From contig OZ116705.1 of assembly GCA_964199315.1 (NCBI GenBank), positions 27,280,001-27,344,000 of the forward strand: a DNA stretch of 64,000 nucleotides, in the 5' to 3' direction. Numbering within the stretch: the stretch's first letter is position 1; each line of letters starts with the position of its first letter. This document shows positions 2,561 to 41,400 of the stretch, in pieces. The stretch comes from Orbicella franksi (lineage: Eukaryota). Both the position numbers and the translations under genes were made by a program. The notes beneath the pieces are model-generated. The model saw only the letters and a list, made by a program, of their open reading frames with translations, ran no database searches and was not told the DNA's origin.

Positions 2561-3461
2561 TGGTTATGTTATCTTATGGCGCACGCATCCTCGCACACCA
2601 AGTTAGTTTGCATACGAAAGCAAATAATAAGCTGAATCTGGAGTAACAGTGAAACGTAAGACAATTGATGATAGTTTAGCTGTCAGCGGATATTTCCACT
2701 GCACTCAGCCTGTTGAAAACTGTCTGGTTACTTGTACTTTATCCAATTTTTTATCTCATCGAACCGAACTCCAAAACGTCGGACTTAGCACCAACGCATC
2801 GAAGAGCGCAAGTCGTCTGCCATTTAGAAACCTTTTAAAACAGAAGTATATCGCCGAGATCTACCGAGCTTGCAAGTAAATTTTCAATCGCAAAGAGATG
2901 CAAAGAAAAGCTATATTGTCTAATCTATGAGACGCTGTTTATTCGTTAACTGGTCACCCAATAAAACTATATTCGTGTAAAAGTCGGTAGAAAATCGAAG
3001 GGGCGCTTATTAATAAAAACACATTCTAAAGGGGGAGGGGGGACGCTTATTGCATGGATCATTACGGTAGAAAAAGCTGTGGACTAGGATAACTCTTTTT
3101 TTATAACGTTGGGAATTCTATCATACAAAAGAATGTAATATAAAACCACAATGTCTTCTTAGGGATGGAAATTATATTTTTGACGGGGAGAGGCAAGCAA
3201 CTTTTAAGACCTTATTATATATATATTTTTTTTTGGCATGATTTTTTTTTTTTTTTTCGCTTTTTCGCCGTGTTTCTTTCTGGCTGGCTGGTTTTGTGCG
3301 AGTATGTGTTCTGTCGCTTTTTCTTGTACAGGATCGGAATTACTTTGGTAATTGCCCAGCTCCCCTGAAATTTAAGCACTACTTGTGAAAACTATAATAA
3401 TTTCAAAACAACATGCATTTCATAAGACCGTCAAATCTTTGCGTTTTTTGTTATCTTTCAG

Positions 3462-3553
3462 ATACTTTTTCATGTGATGAGACTCAAAAGGAAACAAATG
3501 AGACGTTTCTAAATGGGCAATATTTGCTAACAAATAGAAGCGTGTCATTTAAT
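3462..3553 (+). pseudogene. Orphan exon 3 of a third PAN-EGF-FReD paralog
   Basis: 92 bp, ttatctttcag|AT...AAT|gtaagc, open frame (D)TFSCDETQKETNETFLNGQYLLTNRSVSFN. The flanking intron DNA (~3367-3580) is an inverted homolog of ~24820-25045. Confidence 0.8.
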
Positions 3554-3700
3554 GTAAGCAATATGGAGAAGACATCACTGGCTAACTAGATGAAAGAGAA
3601 GCAAGAAAAACCTGACAAAGGCACGATTTTGTAGCTGATAATTTATGACCCTCTTCTCCAAAAAATGTTTAAGGAATACTAAACTCGCTCCTCTCACATT

Positions 3701-3927
3701 TAGAATGTTCACAGTCTGTCTATTTTTCAACGCACGGAAAAGAAAAAGCGAATCAGAAGCTAGCGCGAAACATGCAGGGATGGGGGTGGGGAGGCGAGCA
3801 AAACGGGCCGAGCCCCTATCCTGTCAAGTCTCCCGTTTTGCGCTGGCGTCCAGTTCTGTGGCGTTTCTACCCACGCGTTCAACGATCAAATAAAAATAGG
3901 AGAAAATAGAAGGTTGAGAACAGTCTA
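3701..3927. mobile_element. Short TAGAC-ended MITE-like repeat (also in copy 2)
   Basis: Ends tagaatgttcacag and gttgagaacagtcta form imperfect TIRs. No clean TSD. Confidence 0.4.
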
Positions 3928-4917
3928 CGCTCATTAGATGTACTGTCACGTGTCAGATGATGGCAATGGATAGACTCTGGTCAGCCGTTAAAACAGCTTT
4001 GTTAATCCGGTTATCAACGGACCACAAAAATTTGGCCGTCTCAACGGCGTGGCCGTATGAAACGGGCTCTTTAAAAGAGAAAATGAATAAAGTGGCAAGA
4101 ATAAAGTGGCCGTAATAACGATATTTTAAAGGAGTTTTAGAAACTCCATTATTTCTGAAATTTATATCGCCGTTATCAATCGAAAACTGATCAAAACTCC
4201 ACTAGATTTACTTTACACTCAGTCCACTGGCCTTGTGTTATCATTTTGAAGCGTTCTCCTCTTTATCGGAACCCCCAAAATAAGGTAAATATTTACGTTT
4301 TAAAATAGCCCTTATGTACATTACGTCTGCACATTACGTTATCCCGTTTCATTCACGAACATTAACAAAATACACGAGTCACAATTACTTTAAGCCACTT
4401 TATACGATGGCTTTTTTTCTCATGAATTGACCAATCTCGTAATAATAGTCGTGCGCTTTGCCAAAGGACAAACGGCTCAGCTTATAGAAGACCCCTAAGC
4501 GTAAAAAAGAGGTAGGGAAACTCGCTAACGGTGTTAATTGCAGATTTGCCGTATAACGTAGAATGTCCAGGACAGAACGCCAGTGTTTTCGCACAAAGGA
4601 CAAATTAATCCCTTTCAATACCCAACAACAGAATGATGAAATAACTACAGAACTGAGAGATCACGCATAGGCTTAAATCTCGAAGTATCTTTTATTCCAA
4701 ATGAGTCAACACTTCAATAACTAAATGTAAACGTGCACAATGCCAAAATACAAAAAGGCTTGAAAATACGGAAATATAGAAGAAAAACGGGCGTTCAGAC
4801 AAATACATATTATGTGATTCTTTCAATATACAGAACAGCAAAAATTACGCCATGTTCTCAATATATGAATACTACTTTCATATGCAAAATAGAATTAACA
4901 TTCATATAGAACCTCTT

Positions 4918-5082
4918 TCTCGCCGATGTTCAGCGGCGAGGTAATTCTGTCTGTATAGTAAAAGAACCAAAATCTCGCCGATGTTCAGCAGCGAGGTAGT
5001 TCTGTCTGTATAATAAAGGAACCAAAATCTCGCCGATGTTCAGCGGCGAGGTAGTTCTCTCTGTATAAGGGACGGAAATCTC
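4918..5082 (+). repeat. 55-bp minisatellite, 3 units (5 units at ~30186-30460 in copy 2)
   Basis: Unit tctcgccgatgttcagcggcgaggtaattctgtctgtatagtaaaagaaccaaaa, with the internal hairpin ctcgccg..cggcgag. Confidence 0.95.
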
Positions 5083-5606
5083 GATGATGATGACGATGAT
5101 GATGATCGTCGGCTAGATTAATGATCCTCAGCGAGATGAATGCAGAAGTACTCTAAAGCAATTCTAAATATATTTCTGTTGCTTTTGCGATCACATAGTT
5201 TAAGACGCGGATGCTGTGTGTTTATATTCCGGACGGTAATTTTTAAATTTTGGAAATCACTTATTATCGGAACTTGAAGTCTAGTAACTGTATTTTGTAA
5301 AAAACTATCCCGTTGCGTTTGCATACGTTGCTTTCATGATGTTTTCCTATCCTACGTACCCTTGCCACTCTTGCCAATCTCGCAACAATTAATCTCTCTG
5401 TGCAGTTCGAGTACTTGCTGTTCTTACAGTTTGAGTGCCAAAAAAGTGATATTTCCCTTTATGATTTAATTTAATCAAAAAACGAAGGTATATGGATCTA
5501 GTGTTCTATCTTTAATCTCTGAAGTTTGCATAGGTCTTGGCCTCTAGAACTGCACAATTCCATTAAACTTTTTATTAAGCGAATAGTACGCATACTCCAT
5601 CAGTTA

Positions 5607-6038
5607 TTAATCAAACAGTCGCACGTCCTTCTCTTCTACAGACTGCAGCCATTTCTGGTCACCGTCTTCAAAATTAACTATATAGCCCTTGGATCTGTTC
5701 CATGCCGCGATGGTGCCCTTTATCCAGCCGAGATATTCAGTGGAGCCATCCAAATTGGCTCGGTTGTATTCTACCTCAAGTCTTGCTCCAATAAGGGCAT
5801 TACCTGTGGAATAAAGTACATGAATGACTCCCACTACATGACATCCTCTTCAGTCATAGTTAATTTCTCTTGTAATCAAAATGAAAACAAAAACGGGCTT
5901 TTTTCTTTTATGATATAAGCTTGCAACAATGGAATCAGTCAAAGATCATTGACCAAAATTATTTTGTACCTTGTCTCTTTTTACCATGCTTTCCGTAGTT
6001 GCAGGCACGTTGCAACTGGCGCCTTTTATCTGGTGGAC
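5607..6038 (-). CDS. Spliced 3' exons (5985-6038, 5607-5803) encoding a Tudor/Agenet-like domain inside the CACT element
   Basis: cttttag|GT CCA..CAT G|gtaaaa then ttccacag|GT AAT, both phase 1. Protein: PPDKRRQLQRACNYGKHGNALIGARLEVEYNRANLDGSTEYLGWIKGTIAAWNRSKGYIVNFEDGDQKWLQSVEEKDVRLFD. The G.R+EV..W..GTI...Y.V.FEDGD.W pattern is Tudor-like. Upstream coding DNA is interrupted by stops. Confidence 0.6.
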
Positions 6039-7430
6039 CTAAAAGATTTTAACGAGTTGTTAACTATATATAGTACGGGGAAATGAGTTTAGGTAGAGCC
6101 CTGTTCGTTTTCTACCCTTTCAATTGTTTAGGATGACTTCAAACATTGACTACATCTATAATAGTTATAGTAGCACTGCGCCTAACTTGTCCTCTACTGC
6201 ATTAGCTTAATTATCAAAGAATCTGAGTATTGCTGCTGCCTTGAGTAGACAGGACGCAAGCCTTGCGCCAGGGGCGCTTAACATGTTATTTTAAATATAG
6301 GTTGAAAATTTCCTTACTGAGGGGAATGGAATTGAAAGCTGCTGTAGTATTTTCATCGAATGTTGGGAAGGCTTGGGTGAAAACAAAATAATCGTCGCTA
6401 GCAATTGTATAAAGCAAATGGTGTTCAAAACACCGATTGTTACGGTGAAATCTAGAAAGGCGATACTTCGAAGGTAATAGGTGCCATTTCCCAAAGCCCT
6501 TGAACAAAGATGCGGGCCAGGTCCCGCACCCGCATCACAAGAACGAGCTTCACATGTGATAACAATAATGCATGGTCTCACATTATCCGTCAATATTATC
6601 ATCTCGAAAATCTTTTAGGAAAATACTAGGGTCGAGGAATTTAAGAAGGCTCGACAATTGACTGAATCCCAATTGATATCACTAAAAACTTTTAATTTTT
6701 GGAGAATTCCCTACCGTCTTCTTTAGGAACATGAAATCTTCGTTTCCTTCTGCGATTATCGTTTCGCCTCCCTCTTGCTTCTTCAGAGTTGTCACGATAA
6801 GACAGCGAAACATTCTTTCCTGCTGCTACAACTTTGGCTGCCTGCACTCTGTCTTCTCGATATATGTTCTCCAGCAAGGGTTCGAGACTGTTTCCTTTTT
6901 CTGGAATTGACCGCTTATTAATACTTTCTACCGGTTTGTTTGTGTTTGGTCCTTTCTCCAGGTTTCCTCAAAGAGTAAAGTGTAGGCTTTTGTAAACATT
7001 CCTAGACACAGTGGTAATGACGTAAACAAAAATGCACAAATCGTTTTAAAAATGTCCTAACAATCCGAATTAATTTCATTACATTTTTAATTGTCAGGTA
7101 AATTCATAGTACTCGCGACCACTTTTGAGTTAGTTTAAGTTTAAGTTTAATAATACTTTGTCATGAAAAACAAAAAGTACATGACTGGAGAATAATTGGG
7201 GGAAACTAAATTGCCATACAAAGAATATTCTCCGATATTAAACATTCTAAAAAATTAAGAAATAAAACTGTAAATTTGAGTGGGGCCCAAAACTAGCCTA
7301 ATTAAATTGCATACTAAAATTGACACTAAAAATTATGAAGTAAGATTTAAATACGGCCCAAAGCTAACCTAATTAAATTGCATACATGTCACTCACGAGA
7401 TACACCTGATCTAAAATTGACACAAATGAT

Positions 7431-7611
7431 CATCGGCGAGACTTTGGTTCCTTTATTATACAGACAGAACTACCTCGCCGCTGAACATCGGCGAGATTTT
7501 GGCTCCTTTATTATACAGACAGAACTACCTCGCCGCTGAACATCGGCGAGATTTTGGTTGCTTTATTATACAGACAGAATTACCTCGCCGCTGATCATCG
7601 GCGAGATTTTC
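7431..7611 (-). repeat. Inverted copy of the 55-bp minisatellite, 3 units plus a partial unit (copy 2 at ~32810-32990)
   Basis: Reverse complement of the left array. Confidence 0.95.
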
Positions 7612-8299
7612 GTTCGGTATATAAGTGAAATTAAATTATCACATATTCCAAAATTTACATAAAATAGTTTCAATCTATATATTTAAACATTCACATAATA
7701 TGCGAATATATGTAAACCCGAGAAAAACTTCTAGAAAACAAAATGTGAAAATTTTTAAAAGGACATGCTAAAAAACAATTGTGTTATCACAGTTTCCCTC
7801 GGTTTCAGAATTATTTCAAAATGGGGGGAACATATTGTTTGGAAATACGTGCAGATGCTTTATTAGGAAATGTTAAAAGCAATGTTTGAATTTACGACAG
7901 GTACCGGAAATTGCGACAATTCAGTGCTACAATTCACGACATAAGTGTCTAGTATTGTCAGAAAAAAAATTACGAGCAGAAGTTTGATGTCAAGCTTACC
8001 TTTCTAAACAGCAGGTTTTACACGAAAGCCAGGCGTTACGCTTAAAATCTGCTGCATTTTGATGCCATCGTCCTGGAATTGCCTCCAATCCCAAAAGCCA
8101 AATTTCAGGAATGACGGACTTATTTTATGGTTAAGATGCAGTTCGTTATCTCTTAGCTTAAGTTAGGATTGTTATACCGCGGTTAAGTTATGTTATAGCA
8201 AGCAAAATGGTTCCAAAACATACGCACAACAGCTATTTCGCGTACCGGATCTCAGGGAATAACATGACTACAATTTCTTAGTTTGGGAGTCGTTGTTAA

Positions 8300-16695: not shown

Positions 16696-19600
16696 ATGGT
16701 TGGAGTCGCCCTATTTTTGGCAAAGGTTGTCTTGCTTCTTCTCAAACTTAAAACTTCACCATTGTTAATCTCCCTACTGGCTTTGCATCGTTCGCAAGCG
16801 AGCTACAATGTGACAATATTGTTGTTTTACGACGAAACTTGCGATGAACGCATCAAAAAAGAAGCAAGCCAGCTGTCCCACCAAGATATTTTCCCACGGA
16901 AATCTGAAGTAATCAACTTTAGATGGGTAAAAGTCAACGCAACCAGTATTAATCGCAGTCAAGTTGGAGTATTCAGCACTCTTGAATTTCTAGAAAAACA
17001 CTCCACAACAGTAGATGGAGCAATTTTTATCGACGTAACGCCCGATTCAGTAGCTTTTTCATCGCTGTTGAAAAGTTTACACGTCTTAACAGTTGGTTTA
17101 TTTCAAGAGCAAGGAGGTTTCCGAACTGAGGTAACATAGAGAGATATTTGCGCCTCAAAAGTGTTTTAATTTACCAACTTACAGTTCAAAAGTCAACAAC
17201 AAAAGATTGATTTTAATGCTAGCTGGCAAAATGCTTCTTCGACCGCTCAGCCCGATGCCATCAGTGAATCGAACTTGTCGTTAATTTCCTGTGATACAAA
17301 ATCATGAATTTTTAATAAACTTTTCCTTGTCTTTTTCAATGAAGACTGTAATGCTGGTAGCTTAAAATTACTATCAGTAAGATTTAATGTTCCTTAAACT
17401 TTGAAGGTTTCTTCCCAAACGATTTTGCTAAGCGACTCTGTTGCTCCAACTTGAGGTTTTGAAGATTATTTTCTTTAAGCATGGTGTATCCGCGAACATA
17501 TGCCCCATTAAAAACGCAACCGAATGAGCCACGAAATGGGGAGAAATAATGCAGCTAAAAACATTAACTAGAAAAAAGCCTTAAAAGCCATTGTCCACTA
17601 ATATTTGCACAGTTTTCGGAATTCTGCAAAATTACTTTCGCCAGGTCACTCATAGATATTTATTGAACTATGTAATTATTTTTTCAATTTTCTTACCAAA
17701 TAATCAGTAGCTTTCAATGACATTTAATTAAATTCGTTTCAGTTCTCTTGTCCCACTTTCCTTTATTCTACTTTAGAAATACAGACAACCACTTAGTAAG
17801 TTTATGAAAAAATGTAAGTTTACTACAAGGATCGTGGCATGAATACGTCTCACAACTGTTTCAGATTTCAGTCTTGTTCCGACGTTCCGATTTTAGCTTT
17901 TCTTTTATCTACGTACATTTTTTATACATACATTTTTATTTTTGTTTTCAAATAAAAATAACAATTATCTCAGTAAAAGAATTAAAAGATGTAGAGGCGT
18001 AGAAACGAAACTCAACTAAAAATAAATTAGGAATAAAAAGCCAATAAACTGACATTTCACACGAAGCGTAAAAGGAATTCAAGTGAGAAAGTAAGATGTG
18101 CCAATTATAATTTTCTTACTGCATTTGATCCGGTCAGGTATTACAAATAAAAAGCGAAGTAGAAAACGTAAGGCAAACAGTTGAAAGTCCGTTTCGCCTT
18201 CTTTTAATCCGTTTTTTTATTTTATTCCTTTATTAGGAACATTCTGGTGATTTTACGAGAGTGGTATTTCCATCAATGTTTCGCTACGCGACCTCAGTGT
18301 GGAGAATTATAAAGAAACATGGATGGAAAACTATTTCGTTAGTGCTGTCTGCTGACTACGAAGGCATCAAATTTGTGGAGAGTATGCGAAGCTACGCTTT
18401 TCAGGAGAAATGGCAAATTTTTAAGGTAGTCTGGCTAACGGAGGACCCGATTGGAAATGGCACAGAAACAGAATTAAAAGATGTAGTGAGTAATACGACA
18501 AACGATGTTATTGTTATGCACAGCAGGTTGTGGCAGGATGCGCAGCTCTTTGCGATTGTTCAAGAGCTTGGCCTCAGCAAACAGAAAGCTGTGTGGATTA
18601 TAACAGAAATCACAAGCCACCAGTTTAAGAACTGTCAGAAACTTCCACAGGGACTGCTAAAGATAAGCCTCAAACGTCCAGAAAAACATCACGACTACGT
18701 TATTTACGAAAATGCTCTTCACGATGCCGTCTCATTGTTTCAACTTTCCTTTGAAGAGAGTTTGAAAGAGTATTCTCTGAATTTCAATGTAGAGGATTGT
18801 GAACAAAGAATCACCCGTGACAGAATAAGGCGCATTTCCAAAAGGTATCTGTCTCTCAATTTCCAACCTTTGTTTTCAAATATATTTCCACCAAGAGAAG
18901 ATCAAGGTGGAATCCAAGTCCCTCTTAAGTTATATTTAGACATGGAGAGTCCAGGAGAGTTTCTTGAGACTACCTGAGACGAAATGGCGGAAAATGTGGG
19001 GAAAAGTCTTTGATCCTCTCTTTATTCTCACTCGTTTTTCTAGATGTACAAGTCTTTGTTCATGATCAGTTTTTGAACGACATCGTCTTCAATGTGCCCA
19101 TAAATCGTGCAGCTTTTGTTCTAAACGGGTCTTCCTCTCTCCCAATCCCTTTTAGCTTTCGCTAAAGTTAATTTTCTGCTAAATGCTAACACATGCTGTA
19201 TTTGAAGGCCTAGCTTGAAGATAGCATGAATACCTATATTTAGTTTCGTGGGAGAGGCGAGGAATGGTTCACTCTGTCCATGACCAATGAGCATTCGAAT
19301 AGAAACGCATAAGAGATAATTTCCCAGGCAATTTAACCTGATATTTACATAATTTTACTGTGCAGATACTTGACACAGATATCATTGTCGGGGCGAAGTA
19401 TACTCTTTGATCCTCTTGCGCTCAAGAACAAGCATCCCGCTTTTACAATCTGGAACCTGAAGAGAGACGGAGATGGTGTAAAGAAATGGTTCCCTGCAGG
19501 AATGGGTGCAACCACTGGCCTTGCTATGGAGAAATTCACAGCACCTAACGGAACGCTCATAAAAGCCGCTTCTCAAATTCCAAAACGTGTTATCCGCGTG

Positions 19601-28821: not shown

Positions 28822-30166
28822 GTAAGCAATGTGGAGAAGACATCACTGGCTAACTAGATGAAAGAGAAGCAAGAAAAACCTGACAAAGGCACGATTTTGT
28901 AGCTGATAATTTATGACCCTCTTCTCCGAAAAATGTTTAAGGAATACTAAACTCGCTCCTCTCACATTTAGAATGTTCACAGTCTGTCTATTTTTCAACG
29001 CACGGAAAAGAAAAGGCGAATCATAAGCTAGCGCGAAACATGCAGGGATGGGGGTGGGGAGGCGAGCAAAACGAGCCGAGCCCCTATCCTGTCAAGTCTC
29101 CCCTTTTGCGCTGGCGTCCAGTTCTCTGGCGTTTCTACCCACGCGTTCAACGATCAAATAAAAATAGGAGAAAATAGAAGGTTGAGAACAGTCTACGCTC
29201 ATTAGGTGTACTGTCACGTGTCAGATGATGGCAACGGATAGACTCTGGTCAGCCGTTAAAACAGCTTTGTTAATCCGGTTATCAACGGACCACAAAAATT
29301 TGGCCGTCTCAACGGCGTGGCCGTATGAAACGGGCTCTTTAAAAGAGAAAATGAATAAAGTGGCAAGAATAAAGTGGCCGTAATTACGATATTTTAAAGG
29401 AGTCTTAGAAACTCCATTATTTCTGAAATTTATATCGCCGTTATCAATCGAAAACTGATCAAAACTCCACTAGATTTTCTTTACACTCAGTCCACTGGCC
29501 TTGTGTTATCATTTTGAAGCGTTCTCCTCTTTATCGGAACCCCCAAAATAAGGTAAATATTTACGTTTTAAAATAGCCCTTATGTACATTACGTCTGCAC
29601 ATTACGTTATCCTGTTTCATTCACGAACATTAACAAAATACACGAGTCACAATTACTTTAAGCCACTTTATACGATGGCTTTTTTTCTCATGAATTGACC
29701 AATCTCGTAATAATAGCCGTGCGCTTTGCCAAAGGACAAACGGCTCAGCTTATAGAAGACCCCTAAGCGTAAAAAAGAGGTAGGGAAGCTCGCTAACGGT
29801 GTTAATTGCAGATTTGCCGTATAACGTAGAATGTCCAGGACAGAACGCCAGTGTTTTCACACAAAGGACAAATTAATCCCTTTCAATACCCAACAACAGA
29901 ATGATGAGATAACTACAGAACTGAGAGATCACGCCTAGGCTTAAATCTCGAAGTATCTTTTATTCCAAATGAGTCAACACTTCAATAACTAAATGTAAAC
30001 GTGCACAATGCCAAAATACAAAAAGGCTTGAAAATACGGAAATATAGGAGAAAAACCGGCGTTCAGACAAACACATATTATGTGATTCTTTCAATATACA
30101 GAACAGCAAAAATTACGCCATGTTCTCAATATATGAATACTACTTTCATATGCAAAATAACATTAA

Positions 30167-33006
30167 CACTCATATAGAACCTCTTTCTCGCCGATGTTCA
30201 GCGGCGAGGTAATTCTGTCTGTCTAGTAAAAGGACCAAAATCTCGCCGATGTTCAGCAGCGAGGTAGTTCTGTCCGTATAATAAAGCAACCAAAATCTCG
30301 CCGATGTTCAGCGGCGAGGTAATTCTGTCTGTATAGTAAAAGAACCAAAATCTCGCCGATGTTCAGCAGCGAGGTAGTTCTGTCTGTATAGTAAAAGAAC
30401 CAAAATCTCGCCGATGTTCAGCGGCGAGGTAGTTCTCTCTGTATAAGGGACGGAAATCTCGATGATGATGACGATGATGATGATCGTCGGCTAGATTAAT
30501 GATCCTCAGCGAGATGAATGCAGAAGTACTCTAAAGCAATTCTAAACATATTTCTGTTGCTTTTGCGATCACATAGTTTAAGACGCGGATGCTGTGTGTT
30601 TATATTCCGGACGGTAATTTTTAAATTTTGGAAATCACTTATTATCGGAACTTGAAGTCTAGTAGCTGTATTTTGTAAAAAAATATCCCGTTGCGTTTGC
30701 ATACGTTGCTTTCATGATGTTTTCCTATCCTACGTACCCTTGCCACTTTTGCCAATCTCACAACAATTAATCTCTCTGTGTAGTTCGAGTACTTGCTGTT
30801 CTTACAGTTTGAGTGCCAAAAAAGTGATATTTCCCTTTATGATTTAATTTAATCAAAAAACGAAGGTATATGGATCTAGTGTTCTATCTTTAATCTCTGA
30901 AGTTTGCATAGGTTTTGGCCTCTAGAACTGCACAATTCCATTAAACTTTTTATTAAGCGAATAGTACGCATACTCCATCAGTTATTAATCAAACAGTCGC
31001 ACGTCCTTCTCTTCTACAGACTGCAGCCATTCCTGGTCACCGTCTTCAAAATTAACTATATAGCCCTTGGATCTGTTCCATGCCGCGATGGTGCCCTTTA
31101 TCCAGCCGAGATATTCAGTGGAGCCATCCAAATTGACTCGGTTGTATTCTACCTCAAGTCTTGCTCCAATAAGGGCATTACCTGTGGAATAAAGTACATG
31201 AATGACTCCCACTACATGACATCCTCTTCAGTCATAGTTAATTTCTCTTGTAATCAAAATGAAAACAAAAACGGGCTTTTTTCTTTTATGATATAAGCTT
31301 GCAACAATGGAATCAGTCAAAGATCATTGACCAAAATTATTTTGTACCTTGTCTCTTTTTACCATGCTTTCCGTAGTTGCAGGCACGTTGCAACTGGCGC
31401 CTTTTATCTGGTGGACCTAAAAGATTTTAACGAGTTGTTAACTATATATAGTACGGGGAAATGAGTTTAGGTAGAGCCCTGTTCGTTTTCTACCCTTTCA
31501 ATTGTTTAGGATGACTTCAAACATTGACTACATCTATAATAGTTATAGTAGCACTGCGCCTAACTTGTCCTCTACTGCATTAGCTTAATTATCAAAGAAT
31601 CTGAGTATTGCTGCTGCCTTGAGTAGACAGGACGCAGGCCTTGCGCCAGGGGCGCTTAACATGTTATTTTGAATATAGGTTGAAAATTTCCTTACTGAGG
31701 GGAATGGAATTGAAAGCTGCTGTAGTATTTTCATCGAATGTTGGGAAGGCTTGGGTGAAAACAAAATAATCGTCGCTAGCAATTGTATAAAGCAAATGGT
31801 GTTCAAAACACCGATTGTTACGGTGAAATCTAGAAAGGCGATACTTCGAAGGTAATAGGTGCCATTTCCCAAAGCCCTTGAACAAAGATGCGGGCCAGGT
31901 CCCGCACCCGTACCACTAGAATGAGCTTCACATGTGATAACAATAATGCATGGTCTCACATTATCCGTCAATATTATCATCTCGAAAATCTTTTAGGAAA
32001 ATACTAGGGTCGAGGAATTTAAGAAGGCTCGACAATTGACTGAATCCCAATTGATATCACTAAAAACTTTTAATTTTTGGAGAATTCCCTACCGTCTTCT
32101 TTAGGAACATGAAATCTTCGTTTCCTTCTGCGATTATCGTTTCGCCTCCCTCTTGCTTCTTCAGAGTTGTCACGATAAGACAGCGAAACATTCTTTCCTG
32201 CTGCTACAACTTTGGCTGCCTGCACTCTGTCTTCTCGATATATGTTCTCCAGCAAGGGTTCGAGACTGTTTCCTTTTTCTGGAATTAACTGCTTATTAAT
32301 ACTTTCTACCGGTTTGTTTGTGTTTGGTCCTTTCTCCAGGTTTCCTCAAAGAGTAAAGTGTAGGCTTTTGTAAACATTCCTAGACACAGTGGTAATGACG
32401 TAAACAAAAATGCACAAATCGTTTTAAAAATGTCCTAACAATCCGAATTAATTTCATTACATTTTTAATTGTCAGGTAAATTCATAGTACTCGCGACCAC
32501 TTTTGAGTTAGTTTAAGTTTAAGTTTAATAATACTTTGTCATGAAAAACAAAAAGTACATGACTGGAGAATAATTGGGGGAAACTAAATTGCCATACAAA
32601 GAATATTCTCCGATATTAAACATTCTAAAAAAATTAAGAAATAAAACTGTAAATTTGAGTGGGGCCCAAAACTAGCCTAATTAAATTGCATACTAAGATT
32701 GACACTAAAAATTATGAAATAAGATTTAAATACGGCCCAAAGCTAACCTAATTAAATTGCATACATGTCACTCACGAGATACACCTGATCTAAAATTGAC
32801 ACAAATGATCATCGGCGAGACTTTGGTTCCTTTATTATACAGACAGAACTACCTCGCCGCTGAACATCGGCGAGATTTTGGCTCCTTTATTATACAGACA
32901 GAACTACCTCGCCGCTGAACATCGGCGAGATTTTGGTTGCTTTATTATACAGACAGAATTACCTCGCCGCTGATCATCGGCGAGATTTTCGTTCGGTATA
33001 TAAGTG
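30167..33006. mobile_element. CACT-ended DNA transposon, copy 2
   Basis: Left end CACTCATATAGAAC, right end ...ggtatataagtg, AA flanks. It is 111 bp longer than copy 1, essentially through two extra repeat units. Confidence 0.6.
30985..31416 (-). CDS. Tudor/Agenet-like exons, copy 2 (31363-31416, 30985-31181)
   Basis: Same splice sites, frame intact, two amino-acid changes (A>V, K>E). Confidence 0.6.
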
Positions 33007-35433
33007 AAATTAAATTATCACATATTCCAAAATTTACATAAAATAGTTTCAATCTATATATTTAAACATTCACATAATATGCGAATATATGTAAACCCGA
33101 GAAAAACTTCTAGAAAACAAAATGTGAAAATTTTTAAAAGGACATGCTAAAAAGCAATTGTGTTATCACAGTTTCCCTCGGTTTCAGAATTATTTCAAAA
33201 TGGGGGGAACATATTGTTTGGAAATACGTGCAGATGCTTTATTAGGAAATGTTAAAAGTAATGTTTGAATTTACGACAGGTATCGGAAATTGCGACAATT
33301 CAGTCCTACAATTCACGACATAAGTGTCTAGTACTGTCAGAAAAAAAATTACGAGCAGAAGTTTGATGTCAAGCTTGCCTTTCTAAACAGCAGGTTTTAC
33401 ACGAAAGCCAGGCGTTACGCTTAAAATCTGCTGCATTTTGATGCCATCGTCCTGGAATTGCCTCCAATCCCAAAAGCCAAATTTCGGGAATGACTTATTT
33501 TATGGTTAAGATGCAGTTCGTTATCTCTTAGCTTAAGTTAGGGTTGTTATACCGCGGTTAAGTTATGTTATAGCAAGCAAAATGGTTCCAAAACATACGC
33601 ACAACAGCTATTTCGCGTACCGGATCTCAGGGAATAACATGACTGCAATTTCTTAGTTTGGGAGTCGTTGTTAAGGTATCAGTATACCGTACCCCAAAAT
33701 TGACCATTTTTCAAAGAAATTGTTTTTCGCTCTTTCAGATAGATCTTTTTATGGTCTTTAATTTTAAAAAAAAATTCTACGAAAAAAAATATTAATTCTA
33801 TGCAAAGTTACAAACGAAAAACGTTTCTTTTCGTTAATTATCTCTAATTGATAGCTGTCAACGGGTTGTCACAAGAAGTATATGCAAACTTGCAATTGCC
33901 GTCTATGAACCAACCGTTTGTGTTCGGTATGGTCGACGTGCTGGTCTGGGTGCCCGGGTCTGGGTGCTCTCTGTTTGTAGATTGTTGATTTAACCTTAAA
34001 TATGTCGTCGAAGAAACACAAAAGTTCGTGCCATTTGCAAGCTCGAAGAAAGCACCACGGAGAAAAAGGTCGGGGGAAAAGGTTTGAAAAACATTCGATC
34101 AGAATTGGGCTGATGCGTTAGCTGCTAGCGACAAAGGTTGCTTGCACTGGACGTGGAAGATGTTTGACATTTTCTACGCATTACTTTCTTGGTGCTTTCG
34201 CCGTTCAAAGCGGTAACATTAATAAACCCATTTCAACTTAATCGGTGTCTCGTGGGTTTCCTTCAAGTTGTTTACGAGTTTACGTTTTAAAAATCGAAAG
34301 CAAGAAACAGGAGCCAAAATTATTCGTTTTTTTATTTTAATGAATACACCCCCGTAATTAACAATTCCTAAGCTTTCAGAAAATGTATACTTTACTGGGG
34401 TTTGGGTAAAACATCCGACCGTAATGCGGCGTCAACGAATTATGGTCATTTGGGGTATACTGATAGTTACCTCAAAGGAGCTCAGTCACGGTGTTTTGAG
34501 TTATTTCGGCCACGTACAAAATCAGCTTAAAATTGAAAGAAACCTGAGAAAAGTAGTCTACTAAGATAAAAAAAAAACCAAAGAGATAAAAATCACCCAT
34601 AAAGAAACAAGTTTGGTTAAGGATGGAGAAGATTAACACAGATTACGAACGACACTCTTGAAAGATTTAGCGTAAACTTTTAGAGGCTCCTCCTTTACGC
34701 TTTAGTGTAGTGTATGGTGTTTTGAATCGGCTATTGTGCATCGCTACACGAGAACATTACCAACCTTTCAATCTGGCTCTGCTGTTTGCCAGTCGAGGTT
34801 TGTTTCATTTTGAATGTAATAACGTCAGCATGTTTAATTAGTTACAATGTAAACAATGTTGAAATTCTCTCGTTTACGGTTATCTAGCCCTTACAACTAC
34901 GCGACATCTGTTTTAATAAAGTTGCTGACATTTTACCACAATTTGCCATCTGGCTTATAAAAGAAATTGCTCATATTTTGAATCGAAATGTACAAATACC
35001 CTGTGCTTTTACTGTCGATCTGTACACAGGGATCCAAAGCTCCAGCTGTGAGCGACTAAGACTGTCTGGGAATATTTATGATCGTTTTTAGGGATACTAA
35101 AAAGATAAAAATACCTTATGCTACCTCCACAGTACATTGCTTGTTGTCTGTTCGCTTTTCCAGCTTATTTGAAGCGATTTTGGTGAGTTATCGTTCCCTG
35201 GATTAAGAAATTGTTTCGCTGCAAAGTTGCTTCCAATCAGCAGAAAAAGCAAACAGACAACGTAACTGTCAAACCGACAACTTATTAGCAGCCTGACCTC
35301 TAACAGATCTAGAAATCAACCAATCAGGTCTTCTTATTACACTACACGACGGTGGTAGCCATAGAAACACCATTACATTTATAAATGTGAAGTTTTTGGA
35401 ACAACTTCCCTTTCCAAGACGACTTACCAAGCA

Positions 35434-38400
35434 ATGCATGGCCATAGGCTTCTAGCGTTTCTCCTTTTTCAAAGAATGATAAATGTTTGTTATCTCGCGG
35501 TCGCAGAAGACCTTACATGGTCTCGCTCGGCGTATTTCACGACGCACGAGAATCAGCGGCTTGAAGGCCACGTCGTTGAGCAGTTTGAGTCACCTAGTTC
35601 AATATCGTGCAGTTATTCTTGTCTGAGAAATCCCTGGTGTACTTCCACAAACTTCAACGTGTTATCCGAGAAGAACGACAGAGGAACGTGCGAACTGAAC
35701 AAGCACGGAGTCCTCGATGAAAACTCTGAGTTTCATGAAAAAGACGGAGTGACATTTTCTTTGATCCAGAAGGTAGGGCATTATTAGCAAACGTTTTTGA
35801 CCAGTTGTATTAAGGAAGTTCGCACTGTCTTCCTTTATACGAATATATCTTCGCAAACTCATTAATAATACACCTTTTGCTGTTCATTTACAGAAAATAA
35901 ACATTCATTTGTTTCCAAGTTTCTTTCATTATGATCATTAAACTCTCATTAACACCAATATGACCTTCATTTGCGCGTAAGGAACGTTCAAGAAAAACAT
36001 TTACATATGCATTAACATTCAAAATCATCAAAAGAAAAACAATACCTTCATTTGACATTCATTGACTGTAAATGTATTTTCATTTTGGTCGAAAAAAAAT
36101 TCGTTGTCACGAAACGACAATCATTTACACTTTACGACATTCAGTTTTCAACAAAAGACTTTCAATAACACAATTTGCATGAGAACTAACATTCAATTGC
36201 ATTACTATGCAACCATATCCATGAAGGTAACAATCTTTAATGCGGCGAGACAAACATTACAGCCATAATAACATTTATTTTTGAAAGATAGAATATCAAA
36301 TTCGCTGAACGATTTATCCTTCAATTGCCACACTAGTAAATAGTAAATAGTCTTCATTGACATCTTCAAAAGCCCTGACTATCCTTTCGCAGTGTTCAAA
36401 TGCGATTCTATTTCTTCGTGGCATTTCTGGACAAATCGAACTGTCACTACATGCACATGTATGTCACACGAATACTGTAGTGCGCCCTCTGAGTTGTACG
36501 CAAAAAGTTTCGTAAGTGGCCGAATTTATATCTGCAAGGGGAGGATTGTGAAATTATGATTTGAAAAAAGTACATATGGTCCCTTGTTCTATAATCAAAT
36601 TTTCGAGGAAAATTGGGCGAGATATCTCTGTTCAAAAGAATTACGCTAATGAGCGATTGTTTTCTCTTAACGTTAGGTGAAAACACGGTAATGTATGTCT
36701 CACCGCATTTAAGATTGTTACCTTCATGGATATGGTTGCATAATAATGCAATTGAATGTTAGTTCTCATGCAAATTGTGTTATTGAAAGTCTTTTGTTGA
36801 AAACTGAATGTCGTAAAGTGTAAATGATTGTCGTTTCGTGACAACGAATTTTTTTTCGACCAAAATGAAAATACATTTACAGTCAATGAATGTCAAATGA
36901 AGGTATTGTTTTTCTTTTGATGATTTTGAATGTTAATGCATATGTAAATGTTTTTCTTGAACGTTCCTTACGCGCAAATGAAGGTCATACTGGTGTTAAT
37001 GAGAGTTTAATGATCATAATGAAAGAAACTTGGAAACAAATGAATGTTTATTTTCTGTAAATGAACAGCAAAAGGTGTAAATCATCAAGTTTAAACAAAG
37101 GAAATCATGACCGTGGCGGTGTCTGGATATCTGATCTTAATTAGAAAAGATTTCTCCCTAGTTTTCGTTTCGATTGAGAAGATATATCAAACACTCATGA
37201 CAGTGTTTGACCACACTTCTAAATACCTCGAAGCTCGTCAAAATATTCCGCTGCGCGTCGTATTTTCAACTCACTTCTCGGTGTTTAGAAATGTAGTCAA
37301 ACTCGGTCTTTCGTGTTTGATATATTACTAACAAGAATACCGAGACGAAAATTTGCGAAATTTTAAGAATACTTTGAGAGAAACCGGAGGCTAAGACTCT
37401 AAAAAGAATATAATTTTGCCTGTTGAAAATTTCTTTAAAAAAATGCATAATACAATAACATGTTTTTGCTAAAGCACATAAAATTCTTCCTTTCTCTAAA
37501 CGGCAAAACTAGCCAAAAAACAACAAACTCGGCACTAGCCTTATGCTCGACGCTAACAACATTTCTGCAAAAAGTTGCGTGTGTCATATGGGGCTTTATT
37601 GACTGCAGCCTGGCTCCAAACTTACTTCAACACCATCAAAATCATGAGAATTTCTTTAAAAAAAATATCTAAGAACATTCACAAGAAGATTTTTAAGCTA
37701 ACATCGCCAGAAAGAATAGTTATATAAGAACTTTGAGCGTGGGCCGGAAAAACCATATTCTTATTTAAAAAAAAAAGAGTGTAATCCAGACGAGACTGCT
37801 GAATTTATGGTTTGCTTCAAGCTCTCTATCATTACTTTTGTCCATTAGTGGTCGCTTCGTGCTTAGGATAAAAAGTTTACTATGAAGAGCTCAGTTAAAT
37901 TTGACAGTTATTTCTAAAAGCGTTGCCTATTCGTCAAGAGATCAGTAAATATGTCATTCTTTGCTTGAAAAAGCTTCGCGTAAAAAGTGTAATAAAACTT
38001 TTGATTATTCATTGGGTCTTTTCAGTTGCCAACCTCCTCTAGTAAAGAGTATGTCAATCTTTGTTTTTAAAGTGCCTCTCGTGAAAAGCACATGTGGTTG
38101 AAGTTGAACATTTCAATCTTCGCACCAAATGTGTTACTCGTGAATAGTTCATGATCAGTAAAATATATCAGCACAGTGTTTCAAATGTGCCATTTCTTGT
38201 TCCAAAAGGACTTCTCGAGATCAGCGAAGTAAAACGCTTTTCGTTCTAAATGTGTTTCTCGTGAAGAGCTCAGTAAAATATTTACTCTTCGTTCTCAAAG
38301 CACGTCGCAAACTGGCCCAATAAAACATGACATTTTCTTTTTTCTAAAAGTGCCACGAATGCGCGCTTAAGTACTACGAGAGTTAAAATGTACGCTTGTT

Positions 38401-41400
38401 GAAACCCGGGACCTCCCCTGCTTAATGTAAAATACGGTTCTGTCCGTATAAATTATAGCTTATTCTAATTCTAGCAGTCCTAAACAAAGAAAATACTCCC
38501 TCAGTGTACCAATGCTCGACGACACAACCTAAAATACTACCTGACAAATTATAGCTTCTTACTAATGCGCCAGCACTGTAGTCGATTCTTAATGTTTTAA
38601 GCAACAAGGAGAAAAAGCATACCAATGAATTTTTCGTTTGAATCACTCCTTTTTCATCTGCAACGTAACGGCCTGGTAAGTTTTGGAGGATTTTCCACCG
38701 ATGGCCTTTTCCAGCTTTTTCAAGGTTTTTTACAAGCCGCAAGGGTGCTCCGGTAAAATTGGATTTTGTTTTTCTGGATCAACTGCAGTCCTCCAAGTCT
38801 ATTTATTAAGTTTAAACCAACAGAATGATGTCCTTGGCTGTTTCTGGATTTCTGGTAGTTTTGGCATAGATTTTTTTACCATATTATTGTTACATTTTCT
38901 CCTCTTAAACCCCATTAAGGCTTCGATTTAAAAAAAAGAAAAAAAAAAGATATTTAACATTCGAGACAGTGTTTTTATCTCGAGAATCGTCAAAAATTAT
39001 CTGCTGCGCGTCATATTTTCAGCTCTCTTCTCGTTGATTGGAAATGTGGTAAAACACGGTGTCTCGATCGTGTGTAATGCATTACTGCGCATACAGCTAC
39101 AGATATTCAATTGCTTTTGATATTCTCTTCGCCTGCTATTTTGAACTGTAGGGATGTCTCATAACCGGCTGTCATAATGGTGGCGTTTGTGTAGCTGACG
39201 AGATGAAACAAACATTTTCATGTTTGTGCCAGGTACCGTGGGCTGGAGCAAAATGTGACATTAAAATCGGTAAGAAATGTAAAAGCTCATATGAAGGCAA
39301 CAGGCAGATGCTGTCAATGGTATCGACTGGGTTGAATCACTTCCTTTAACGATCTACTCGTAGGTTTGGTGACGGATTTCCGCTGACCCAAATGCATAGT
39401 CGTCATATCTTCAATGGTACAGTAGCCCATTTCCAAGTTACCCCAAACCTCTCTATCAAAGCGAGGCCTGGTCAACAACTTTCATATGAAAATGAGTTTA
39501 CTTTTGCATGTGAATGAAGTCTCATTTTCGTATGAAAGGATGGACACCAAGACTCGCTTTAAGAAAGAGCTAAGCTGAAGGCAATTCGAACCTTGTCGAA
39601 GATGGCGGCAGAGGGACAAAGTTCCCGCAACAAACCTTGGAAAAGCAAAACAGCGATGCCAATTTCAAATATATCCCAGTGCTAAAGATAACTTGGAGTA
39701 AGACATAATTGTCAACAAATGAAACAAATTGCGTATAAGACCGCTTTGGCTATTTGCCAAAGTATTGAATTAATTGACAACTTTGTAACATCTTTAATTT
39801 GTTCATCTTTCAGATGCCTCCACGTGCGACGAGGCCCAAATGAAAGGCAACCAGATGTTACAAAATGGAGAATATCTGTTAACAAATGGAAGCTTGTCAT
39901 TAAAGGTAAGCAAGATTAAGAAATCATTACTTCCTTGTTATAATGCCATAACGCTGCGTGCCGTCTATTGTTGTAGCAGCCTAAAGGTCGGAACACACGA
40001 GGGGACCAGTCCCTGTGACTAGTCGCTGCAGCTAGTCCCCTGAAGAGTTTACATGAAGGGACTGCTCGCAGGGACTTGTCCCACGAACAGTTCACACGAG
40101 GCGTTCTGAGGAACAAGTCGCAGGGACTTGTTCCCACAAATTCAAACTGGTTTGAATTCGTGGGACTAGTCGCAGGGACCAAACTTTGCTCCCTGTGACT
40201 AGATTTTGAAGCATAAATGGCCAGTTCACACCATGAGACTTGTCCCTGCGACTTCCTGCAGGGTCTAGTCGCAGGGACTATTCCCCTCGTGTGTGCTGAC
40301 CTTAAAAATAAAGTGNNNNNNNNNNNNNNNNNNNNNNNNNNNNNNNNNNNNNNNNNNNNNNNNNNNNNNNNNNNNNNNNNNNNNNNNNNNNNNNNNNNNN
40401 NNNNNNNNNNNNNNNNNNNNNNNNNNNNNNNNNNNNNNNNNNNNNNNNNNNNNNNNNNNNNNNNNNNNNNNNNNNNNNNNNNNNNNNNNNNNNNNNNNNN
40501 NNNNNNNNNNNNNNNNNNNNNNNNNNNNNNNNNNNNNNNNNNNNNNNNNNNNNNNNNNNNNNNNNNNNNNNACAGCACCACCACAAGCACCCTTTTTTAG
40601 ATCGTTAAATAAATTTTACTTCCTTTCTTGCTACTTATGAGTTTAGATAACATCAGCAAGGAAGCTAAACCTTTTGAAATAACCCCCACGTTGACCAACC
40701 GAGTTGTAGTTTTATCGAGACGTGAATAATTGTGTTAAAACATTTAGGACTAAATTAGCCGACTTTCTCTTTGTTGTCTAAAATGACAGAAAACGATAAC
40801 ATTTCTCTTCCACAAATGCATTTTTGTTTTTAGTAGGTGTAACTGTTGCTAGGTGTTTCCATGGTAACCCATTGTGTCATGAAAGTAGTAACAAAATGTT
40901 CACCAATGACTGAGCAGTTTGTCGATGCCATAATTGTAGCATCAATTGACAAAGAGTGGCTGAAATGCCTATCAAAGTGCTGGAAACTGTTGCTAGCCAC
41001 CTTAAAAACCCGTAACCTCTATTTACACGTACTGCGCGCCTTCAATGTCATCGCTTTAATTCGCTTCTTCCGTATTAGGTGTACTGTCACATGACAGATG
41101 ATGGTAAAGGATGGACTCTGATCGCCCGGTTCTCAAATAGTGACATAAGAAGGTGGATGGTTAAATCCGGACGCTTCTGGTACTTCAAGCAAAAAGCCCT
41201 TGGAAACACAACTAGTCCGTCGATAAATGCTGACATGATCTCTACCGCATTTTGGTTGGTCAGCGGCAGAGAGTTTAAGATCACGCGCAGTGATGACCCC
41301 AATCATACTCCTCTGTTACAGACCACAGGTAACTGTTTGGCTGGACAAACATTCCGATCAAAAATCACCAGTTATGGCAACTTTAGAAATGGCACAGTTT

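Follow-up and report, generated by a model that had tools for sequence, protein, structure and literature searches.

A non-autonomous, internally deleted Foldback-like transposon in a scleractinian coral genome, probably of the Mutator superfamily

Termini, target-site duplication and subterminal arrays

The window, a stretch of 64,000 nucleotides from contig OZ116705.1 of the coral Orbicella franksi, contains a repetitive insertion whose limits, set by alignment with independent copies, lie at 4789 and 7719. The left terminal unique region (4789-4917, plus strand) matches 28 genomic copies at 91-97%, and position 4789 is the exact start of the similarity to independent copies; the right terminal unique region (7616-7719, minus strand), its limit likewise set by alignment, matches 25 genomic copies at 94-100%. 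The termini of the element are 5'-CGGCGTTCAG...ATGTAAACCC-3', with a G as the first base of the canonical left tip in the window copy. Directly outside these ends a 9-bp target-site duplication (TSD) was found, AAGAAAAAC at 4780-4788 and GAGAAAAAC at 7720-7728, which agree at eight of nine positions with one mismatch. Perfect 9-bp direct repeats stand directly outside CGGCGTT...AAACCC in 15 of the 19 complete genomic copies examined, and in three further complete copies, including that of the window, the match is 7-8 of 9. The TSDs of the family have no sequence in common and none is TTAA. No empty-site allele of the window insertion was seen.

The initial annotation had correctly recognized this locus as a DNA transposon bearing inverted subterminal arrays, but had placed its ends at 4899 and 7627, with CACT termini and a 2-bp AA duplication. 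Those ends are wrong, as independent copies extend about 110 bp further on each side and both positions fall inside the terminal regions conserved in 25-28 genomic copies. Positions 4899-4902 read CATT instead of CACT, and the AA pair occurs by chance, the surrounding sequence being rich in A and T; the real duplication is 9 bp long.

Next to the unique termini lie two arrays of a 55-bp unit, one of three units on the plus strand (4908-5072) and one of 3.4 units on the minus strand (7427-7615), which is inverted relative to the first and 87-94% complementary to it. The inverted arrays therefore exist as had been proposed, and so does the 7-bp palindrome in each unit, CTCGCCG-N8-CGGCGAG. Unit number varies between ends and between copies, and in other copies the total ranges from 2 to over 60. 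In a set of 600 units drawn from 18 elements the palindrome was the best conserved part of the unit (1.0% mismatches vs 7.4% elsewhere), and its suggested role as a protein-binding site is plausible, although homogenisation of the arrays, rather than selection for binding, could partly explain this conservation.

A second copy of the same insertion, with five units in its left array, is located at 30057-33098 on the plus strand and has the perfect TSD GAGAAAAAC at 30048-30056 and 33099-33107. It lies in the other unit of an apparent tandem duplication of about 25 kb, which contains an N gap, and we rejected it as an independent insertion because its flanks are duplicated as well, at 98-99% identity.

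Exons retained in the window copy

Three exons, all open and in phase under predicted splicing, were identified on the minus strand. Exon A (6715-6967) contains the end of a DDE core with the catalytic-E motif NKPVESINK, an ENIYREDR motif and a basic RRRKRR stretch; it has a donor G|GTAGGG at 6715/6714 and is in phase with exon B (5970-6038), a basic linker PPDKRRQLQRACNYGKHGKKRQ with phase-1 borders on both sides. The last exon, exon C (5607-5803), has its AG acceptor at 5805-5804 and encodes a Tudor-like beta-barrel followed by the stop codon. The two spliced terminal exons described before, with GT/AG borders, a common phase and a Tudor-like barrel, were thus confirmed. The basic stretch noted at 6692-6877 indeed belongs to a real reading frame; however, this frame is not decayed, but is part of the third intact, in-phase exon. 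In an intron of the gene, 7124-7431 is a fragment of an unrelated dispersed repeat of about 310 bp, of which at least 20 separate genomic copies with 80-93% identity were found without the rest of the element. These copies run past 7431, so the fragment was rejected as the element's own end, and 7431 marks an internal deletion breakpoint.

No ATG is present in any of the three exons of the window copy, nor any coding sequence upstream of them, and the Tudor-like domain therefore cannot be made from this copy. The exons are not a one-off capture from the host, since at least 10 copies, as well as a full-size element, carry them too. Capture of a host gene in the manner of Pack-MULEs was also rejected, because the transposase gene of the full-size element, like that of an intronless relative (an intact open reading frame of 2007 aa on contig C12), contains sequence collinear with the exons. 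Exon A aligns to TTNPVEALNRQS...ENIYLEDR of that reading frame, exon B to its GPPDKRR... segment, and exon C is homologous to its C-terminus and to that of the full-size element.

A full-size element and the origin of the window copy

A full-size copy of about 17.5 kb, with the same ends as the window copy, was found at C5:8153829-8171365. It is flanked by the TSD CATTCTCCG and has arrays of 32 and 26 units; full-size composite inverted ends consist of a unique terminus of about 105-130 bp followed by tens of the 55-bp units. The single gene of about 9 kb on its minus strand is predicted to encode, in one protein, a protein kinase, a RecQ-type helicase, a MULE-like DDE transposase that has a zinc finger and the residues D, D, CxxH and E, then a basic stretch and, at the C-terminus, a Tudor-like barrel. 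The copy matches residues 22-2006 of the 2007-aa reading frame on C12. In Pfam searches with the C5 copy itself the kinase, DEAD, Helicase_C and RQC domains scored above threshold and RecQ_Zn_bind below it. Such coral genes appear in databases as 'ATP-dependent DNA helicase RecQ'.

Aligned with C5, the window copy covers positions 1330-1606, 3102-5546 and 18577-18866 of that copy; about 13 kb are absent, and only the last three exons of the transposase gene are retained. Its deletion junction, ...AAATGATC|ATCGGCGAG, is common to one copy on contig C15 only, and the breakpoints differ in other deleted copies. As it has the same termini and the same kind of TSD as an element of coding-competent size, while the internal part is absent, we interpret 4789-7719 as a Foldback-like transposon of a scleractinian coral that belongs to the Mutator (MuDR/MULE) superfamily, is internally deleted and is non-autonomous, a reading to which we assign a probability of roughly 0.9. 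The earlier view that the element had no DDE transposase and carried an accessory reader instead does not hold: its three exons represent what the internal deletion has left of a transposase gene, namely the 3' end, and the catalytic-E motif is retained in exon A. Accordingly, the Tudor-like domain forms the C-terminus of the transposase and is not a separate accessory system.

Probable assignment to the Mutator superfamily

Using the MULE-type DDE signature as defined in PMC10045372 and PMC9587614, we found D253, D324, C349-xx-H352 and E468 to be invariant in eight family homologues, while the window copy keeps only the E motif. Pfam MULE (PF10551) was the only transposase family matched, in five of the eight members (best E 0.005, profile positions 3-94 of 99), all of these matches being under the gathering score (best 16 bits vs a cutoff of 27.6). 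The ten best named clusters of the protein atlas were all MULE, with a top score of 0.96. The TSD length of about 9 bp, seen at 8/9 in the window copy and 9/9 in the second copy, lies within the 8-11 bp of MuDR/MULE elements, and the composite inverted ends of tandem repeats are of the Foldback type.

An alternative that we consider unlikely is membership of the family in AcademH, the Academ lineage that encodes a helicase; the window copy would then still be a deletion derivative. AcademH elements have TSDs of 9 or 10 bp and encode a helicase (PMC10045372), and the helicase of the coral element is large and fused to the transposase. Nevertheless, the sole Pfam transposase match and all ten best atlas clusters point to MULE, and the Foldback-type composite ends fit Mutator/Foldback families. 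The choice of MuDR/MULE over AcademH is supported indirectly, AcademH having been compared by its description only.

Sequence divergence of the exons

Both window copies and several further deletion derivatives keep all three exons open and in phase, and one could imagine that the exons were exapted, a host or truncated transposon transcript yielding a small Tudor-like protein with a role in regulating the family or in reading chromatin. We regard this as very improbable. Besides the absence of a start codon and of any upstream part of the gene, the exon identity among copies (94-97%) is not above the intron identity (94.5-98%), and the copies are young enough for frames to be open by chance. 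Over the three exons dN/dS was 0.13-0.5 between copies from different lineages and 1.6 for the pair formed by the window and C15 copies, which have a deletion breakpoint in common and differ by 17 non-synonymous and 3 synonymous changes.

The remaining alternative, a CACTA/EnSpm (CMC) element bounded by 4899 and 7627 with an AA duplication and a stand-alone gene for a histone reader, could draw on the AGTG at 7624-7627, the AA on both sides and the intact, Tudor-like exons, but is refuted, with next to no probability left to it, by the boundaries and the 9-bp TSDs of independent copies, and the family shows neither CACTA termini nor a 2-3 bp TSD and has a MULE-like transposase whose gene ends in these very exons.

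The Tudor-like barrel

The prediction that the C-terminal domain has a Tudor fold was supported by structure modelling. The last exon was modelled as a five-stranded barrel with a pLDDT of 91, and its structure matched the RDM15 Tudor domain with a Z of 8.6 (rmsd 1.8 Å over 55 residues); Spindlin, SETDB1, PHF20, PHF1 and PHF19 followed with Z of 5.8-7.8, values under 8 being common for small barrels. The best structural matches are methyl-lysine-reading Tudor domains, and in the last exon the conserved aromatic residues Y24, W27 and Y41 are candidate cage residues. At the sequence level no Tudor family reached its Pfam gathering score: Tudor_5, Agenet and PTM_DIR17_Tudor gave E values of 0.01-0.05 at about 15 bits vs cutoffs of 27-31, and Agenet was matched in six of the eight homologues (best E 0.004). 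Sequence searches of the PDB, run with the profile of the barrel and with the exon alone, returned nothing but spurious matches to repeat proteins (polyubiquitin and designed WD-like Ika proteins), and no individual segment reached significance. The Tudor-like domain is a part of the transposase, as chromodomains are in some integrases.

Comparison with known systems

The closest likeness is to the Mutator/Foldback elements, such as FB of Drosophila, Tm1 of root-knot nematodes and the Phantom subclass of MULEs. In Tm1 the terminal inverted repeats are composites of tandem repeats, the tips are asymmetric and the TSDs measure 9 bp (PMC3169594); the coral element likewise has 9-bp TSDs, composite inverted ends with variable counts of short tandem repeats, and short, asymmetric tips outside the repeats (CGGTTAA / CCTACCC in Tm1, CGGCGTT... 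/ ...AAACCC in the coral). A MULE-type DDE transposase with an N-terminal zinc finger is also common to both (PMC3169594), although FLYWCH, unlike in Mutator/Foldback, was not detected by Pfam in the coral family protein. MITE-like and deleted derivatives of Mutator/Foldback elements are mobilised in trans, and by analogy the deleted coral copies may be as well. The coral unit, however, is 55 bp long with an internal 7-bp palindrome, vs about 14 bp in Tm1, and the coral protein, about 2,000 residues long, also includes a protein kinase, a RecQ helicase with RQC and the C-terminal Tudor-like barrel.

KolobokH and AcademH likewise combine a DDE transposase with a helicase of superfamily 2 or of the RecQ type, either encoded alongside it or fused to it (PMC9587614; PMC10045372), and AcademH also resembles the coral family in its 9-10-bp TSDs (PMC10045372). 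KolobokH is known only from fungi, and Kolobok elements duplicate TTAA, 4 bp (PMC9587614), with the helicase downstream of the transposase in KolobokH; in the coral the helicase is upstream and the 9-bp TSD is not TTAA-specific. From both groups the coral family differs in its transposase signature and profile matches, which point to MULE and not to Academ. With CACTA/EnSpm elements it shares subterminal arrays, which are probably transposase-binding sites, and derivatives by internal deletion, whereas termini, TSD length and transposase family are different.

A reader fold of the royal family at the C-terminus of an inserting enzyme, as in the coral, is known from chromoviruses and from the Tudor-bearing Gypsy-10_Ec32 of Ectocarpus, and this C-terminal position is the one expected for target tethering (PMC12477816). 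These are integrases of LTR retrotransposons, while the coral carrier is an animal cut-and-paste DDE transposase whose histone binding is putative. The Gypsy element of the brown alga, reported in 2025, was the only Tudor-bearing transposable element that we found in the literature (PMC12477816), and we found no paper describing the combination of kinase, RecQ helicase, Mutator transposase and Tudor-like domain. The domain combination of the parent family is unusual; the window copy itself is ordinary.

Proposed mechanism and implications

In the mechanism that we propose, the transposase would bind the palindrome repeated in the 55-bp arrays, and DDE cut-and-paste excision would be followed by re-insertion at cuts staggered by 9 bp. 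The window copy may have arisen by abortive gap repair at the short microhomology TGATC, and it would be mobile only if a full-size copy provides the protein. The Tudor-like barrel, an untranslatable remnant in the window copy, may tie the transposase of full-size elements to target chromatin or DNA. A further-reaching and rather doubtful possibility is that the family represents an undescribed animal Mutator/Foldback lineage, in which a protein of about 2,000 residues unites kinase, RecQ helicase and MULE transposase with a Tudor-type reader of histone marks that steers insertion to particular chromatin, the 55-bp arrays serving as multivalent landing pads.

For the window copy, a dead derivative, the consequence is one of routine repeat annotation: it should be masked as Mutator/Foldback and not as CACTA. 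The family, on the other hand, offers a cut-and-paste transposase with kinase, RecQ helicase and reader-type barrel in one polypeptide, and a compact test system, in which natural mini-elements are available alongside a full-size copy and the palindromic repeat is well defined. Should the barrel prove to read histone marks, the idea of targeting known from chromodomain integrases would be extended to DNA transposons, and if insertion is indeed steered in this way, the coral family would provide the first case of a cut-and-paste DNA transposon guided by a reader domain.

Element Ends, Subterminal Arrays and Duplication

Independent genomic copies of the element remain alignable to the window out to 4790 on its left side and to 7720 on its right. 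In an alignment of five left ends the shared sequence begins with CGGCGTTCAGACAAACACATATTATGTGA, where unrelated flanks stop, and the right shared sequence, aligned from two ends and read as the reverse complement, begins with GGGTTTACATATATTCACATATTATGTGA; good genomic matches numbered 28 for the left 130 bp and 25 for the right 105 bp. The window element thus delimited occupies 4789–7719 and is flanked by AAGAAAAAC and GAGAAAAAC. Among 19 complete elements of 0.4 to 17.5 kb, 15 carried a perfect 9-bp direct repeat immediately outside C-GGCGTT...AAACCC, three (the window copy included) matched at 7–8 of the 9 positions, and one had no repeat. The initial annotation had placed the left end at a CACT at 4899, read AA as the target-site duplication (TSD) and assigned the element to CACTA/EnSpm. 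The supposed CACT reads CATT and falls within the conserved terminal region, AA is not a target duplication, given the 9-bp repeats of independent copies, and CACTA/EnSpm membership fails because termini and TSD length are both wrong.

The inverted subterminal arrays and their hairpin-like palindrome, also described initially, are real. Tandem Repeats Finder and a repeat finder located three 55-bp units on the plus strand at 4908–5072 and 3.4 inverted units of 55 bp at 7427–7615, the two arms being 87–94% complementary, and the palindrome CTCGCCG-N8-CGGCGAG was present in every 55-bp unit of the window copy. The unit occurs at hundreds of sites in the ~497-Mb genome, usually as long plus and minus arrays face to face. 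In 600 units from 18 elements, mismatch rates were 1.0% in the palindrome arms, despite the CpGs in each arm, 3.4% in the loop and 7.4% in the remainder; no compensatory changes were found in the arms of these units, so the comparison is uninformative on the hairpin as such. The conservation is consistent with a putative dimeric protein-binding site repeated many times, and homogenisation of the arrays may contribute to it.

Self-comparison showed that 1–24114 recurs at 25044–50828 with 98–99.4% identity, as a tandem duplication of ~25 kb whose second unit is broken by a run of N (assembly gap, 40316–40571). It contains a second element copy (30057–33098), bordered on either side by an exact GAGAAAAAC; the left array of this copy has five units. 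An independent insertion was rejected for this copy, as it occupies the same site inside the duplicated sequence; the insertion is therefore older than the duplication, or the duplication is an assembly artefact. The ~25-kb repeat may reflect a genuine duplication of recent date, or tandem assembly of a second haplotype. Only the second duplicate carries a 1.2-kb insertion at 35870–37079, with the empty site at ~10494 in the first, a clean filled-versus-empty pair within one window; its 392-bp inverted ends (CACCTTTTGCTG...CAGCAAAAGGTG) and TA duplication indicate a Tc1/mariner-type foldback or MITE-like element.

Full-Size Element and Deletion Derivatives

Through a weaker match (49% identity), an intact, intronless ORF of 2007 amino acids was found on another contig of this genome (C12:14519652–14525675, minus strand). 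It encodes a protein kinase domain (residues 43–323), a DEAD/Helicase_C helicase (758–1290, with a weak, sub-threshold RecQ RQC match) and a weak MULE match (1631–1729), and its C-terminus is collinear with all three window exons. The ORF belongs to a sister family (kinase, RecQ, MULE-like, Tudor-like) 40–50% identical to that of the window; ~0.8 kb past its stop there is an array of 11 repeat units of 57 bp, and its transposase region shares 75% identity with a Stylophora pistillata protein that carries a RecQ helicase annotation.

A 17.5-kb element, the full-size representative of the family to which the window copy belongs (C5:8153829–8171365, minus strand), matched residues 22–2006 of the C12 protein in tblastn, with the first ~1,450 residues in a single open frame and the transposase part over several exons. 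Its termini are those of the window copy, its TSD (CATTCTCCG) is perfect, and its two arrays number 32 and 26 units; in its own frame, Pfam detected kinase, DEAD, Helicase_C and RQC domains above threshold and RecQ_Zn_bind below it.

The window element maps to positions 1330–1606, 3102–5546 and 18577–18866 of this copy and so lacks ~13 kb: the kinase and helicase regions are gone, together with the greater part of both the transposase and the right array. The left array has 3 units versus 32. The deletion junction, between ...AAATGATC and ATCGGCGAG, lies within a TGATC microhomology and is common to the C15 copy only; the breakpoint of the C6 copy lies 8 bp beyond it, and those of the C1 and C5b copies are more distant again. 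These differing breakpoints give the usual picture of one autonomous element from which several derivatives arose by independent deletions.

Positions 7124–7431 hold a fragment of a separate dispersed repeat (~310 bp or more, at least 20 genomic copies, 80–93% identity), with (AAGTTT)n at its start and two direct repeats of 41 bp within it. In the full-size element it lies in a transposase-gene intron; in the window copy it marks the deletion breakpoint. Two derivatives, C6:8247853–8248260 (0.4 kb) and C10:21554899–21555777 (0.9 kb, perfect 9-bp TSD AACAAAGAC), consist of termini and 2 or 11 units with no internal sequence and show miniaturisation down to MITE size. The copy at C3:15850943–15853258 shares only ~82–85% identity; its arrays have diverged, a stop and indels interrupt its three terminal exons, and it represents an older subfamily of this element.

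Coding Remnant and Tudor-Like Domain

The window copy retains three exons on the minus strand. Exon A (6715–6967; donor G/GTAGGG, in phase with exon B) aligns with TTNPVEALNRQS...ENIYLEDRLQAVK...KSKRKR of the C12 ORF, exon B (5970–6038; 69 nt, GT/AG borders, phase 1 on both sides) with GPPDKRR, and exon C (5607–5803; open, AG acceptor) with LIEVEYDEKD...YWGWCKGQIVAY...GYLVKFED...DVRLLDQ. Borders and phase bear out the two spliced terminal exons proposed earlier; the basic ORF reported at 6692–6877 is likewise real, and belongs to the third exon, A. Near-full copies of the internal 2.35 kb (~94% identity) are present on C1, C5 and C6, with fragments elsewhere, and at least 10 genomic copies include the last exon. 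As the three window exons contain no ATG and no part of the gene lies upstream, the window copy is unable to make the domain unless spliced to a foreign start.

Over the three exons, dN/dS was 0.13–0.5 between copies of different lineages (small counts), consistent with divergence while the gene functioned in master copies. Comparison of the window copy with the C15 copy, which has the same breakpoint, gave 17 non-synonymous and 3 synonymous changes and a ratio of 1.6 (small counts), as would be expected of decay after the deletion. Exon and intron identities between copies were similar.

The Tudor-like fold proposed for the last exon was upheld by structure prediction. Folded alone from an alignment of 12 family members, it was confidently modelled as a five-stranded barrel (pLDDT 91), for which Foldseek returned the RDM15 Tudor with H3K4me1 as best match, followed by Spindlin, PHF19/PHF1 and SGF29. 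VIA-align gave Z 8.6 for RDM15 (rmsd 1.8 Å over 55 residues) and Z 5.8–7.8 for Spindlin, SETDB1, PHF20 and PHF1/19; Pfam gave Tudor_5 and Agenet below threshold only. The predicted structure thus supports a Tudor-like fold; a methyl-lysine cage in it would be putative. The domain had been proposed as a possible accessory system; it is kept at the C-terminus in nearly all homologues and is therefore part of the transposase and no accessory gene. A 2025 study presented the Tudor domain of an Ectocarpus Gypsy element as the first on a transposable element (PMC12477816).

Superfamily Assignment

Eight homologues were aligned: the C12 ORF, the S. pistillata protein (named 'ATP-dependent DNA helicase RecQ') and six unnamed proteins from public assemblies. 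Two aspartates, a CxxH and the glutamate of the motif TNPVES(L/I)NRQS were invariant, and a cysteine/histidine-rich region lies upstream. MULE was the only transposase family matched in Pfam (5 of 8 members, best E 0.005, near-full profile coverage, below the gathering score), and for this region the ten top-ranked named protein-atlas clusters were all MULE families (top score 0.96), one of them MULE plus FLYWCH. The 9-bp TSD points to MuDR. Mutator/Foldback elements such as Tm1 (PMC3169594) are recognised by composite inverted tandem-repeat ends, short asymmetric tips and TSDs of 9 bp, all of which the window family has.

Helicase-bearing DNA transposons are already known in AcademH and KolobokH. 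AcademH, to which PMC10045372 ascribes 9–10-bp TSDs and a helicase, is a minor alternative to a Mutator-type assignment, compared here indirectly. KolobokH, a fungal group with RecQ fused to the transposase (PMC9587614), is excluded by its TTAA TSD versus the 9 bp here.

No Mutator-type element with a kinase, a RecQ helicase and a Tudor-like domain turned up in the literature searched. The element in the window is a dead derivative of an ordinary kind, and its initial classification was wrong; the Tudor observation does lead to a real, unusual family.
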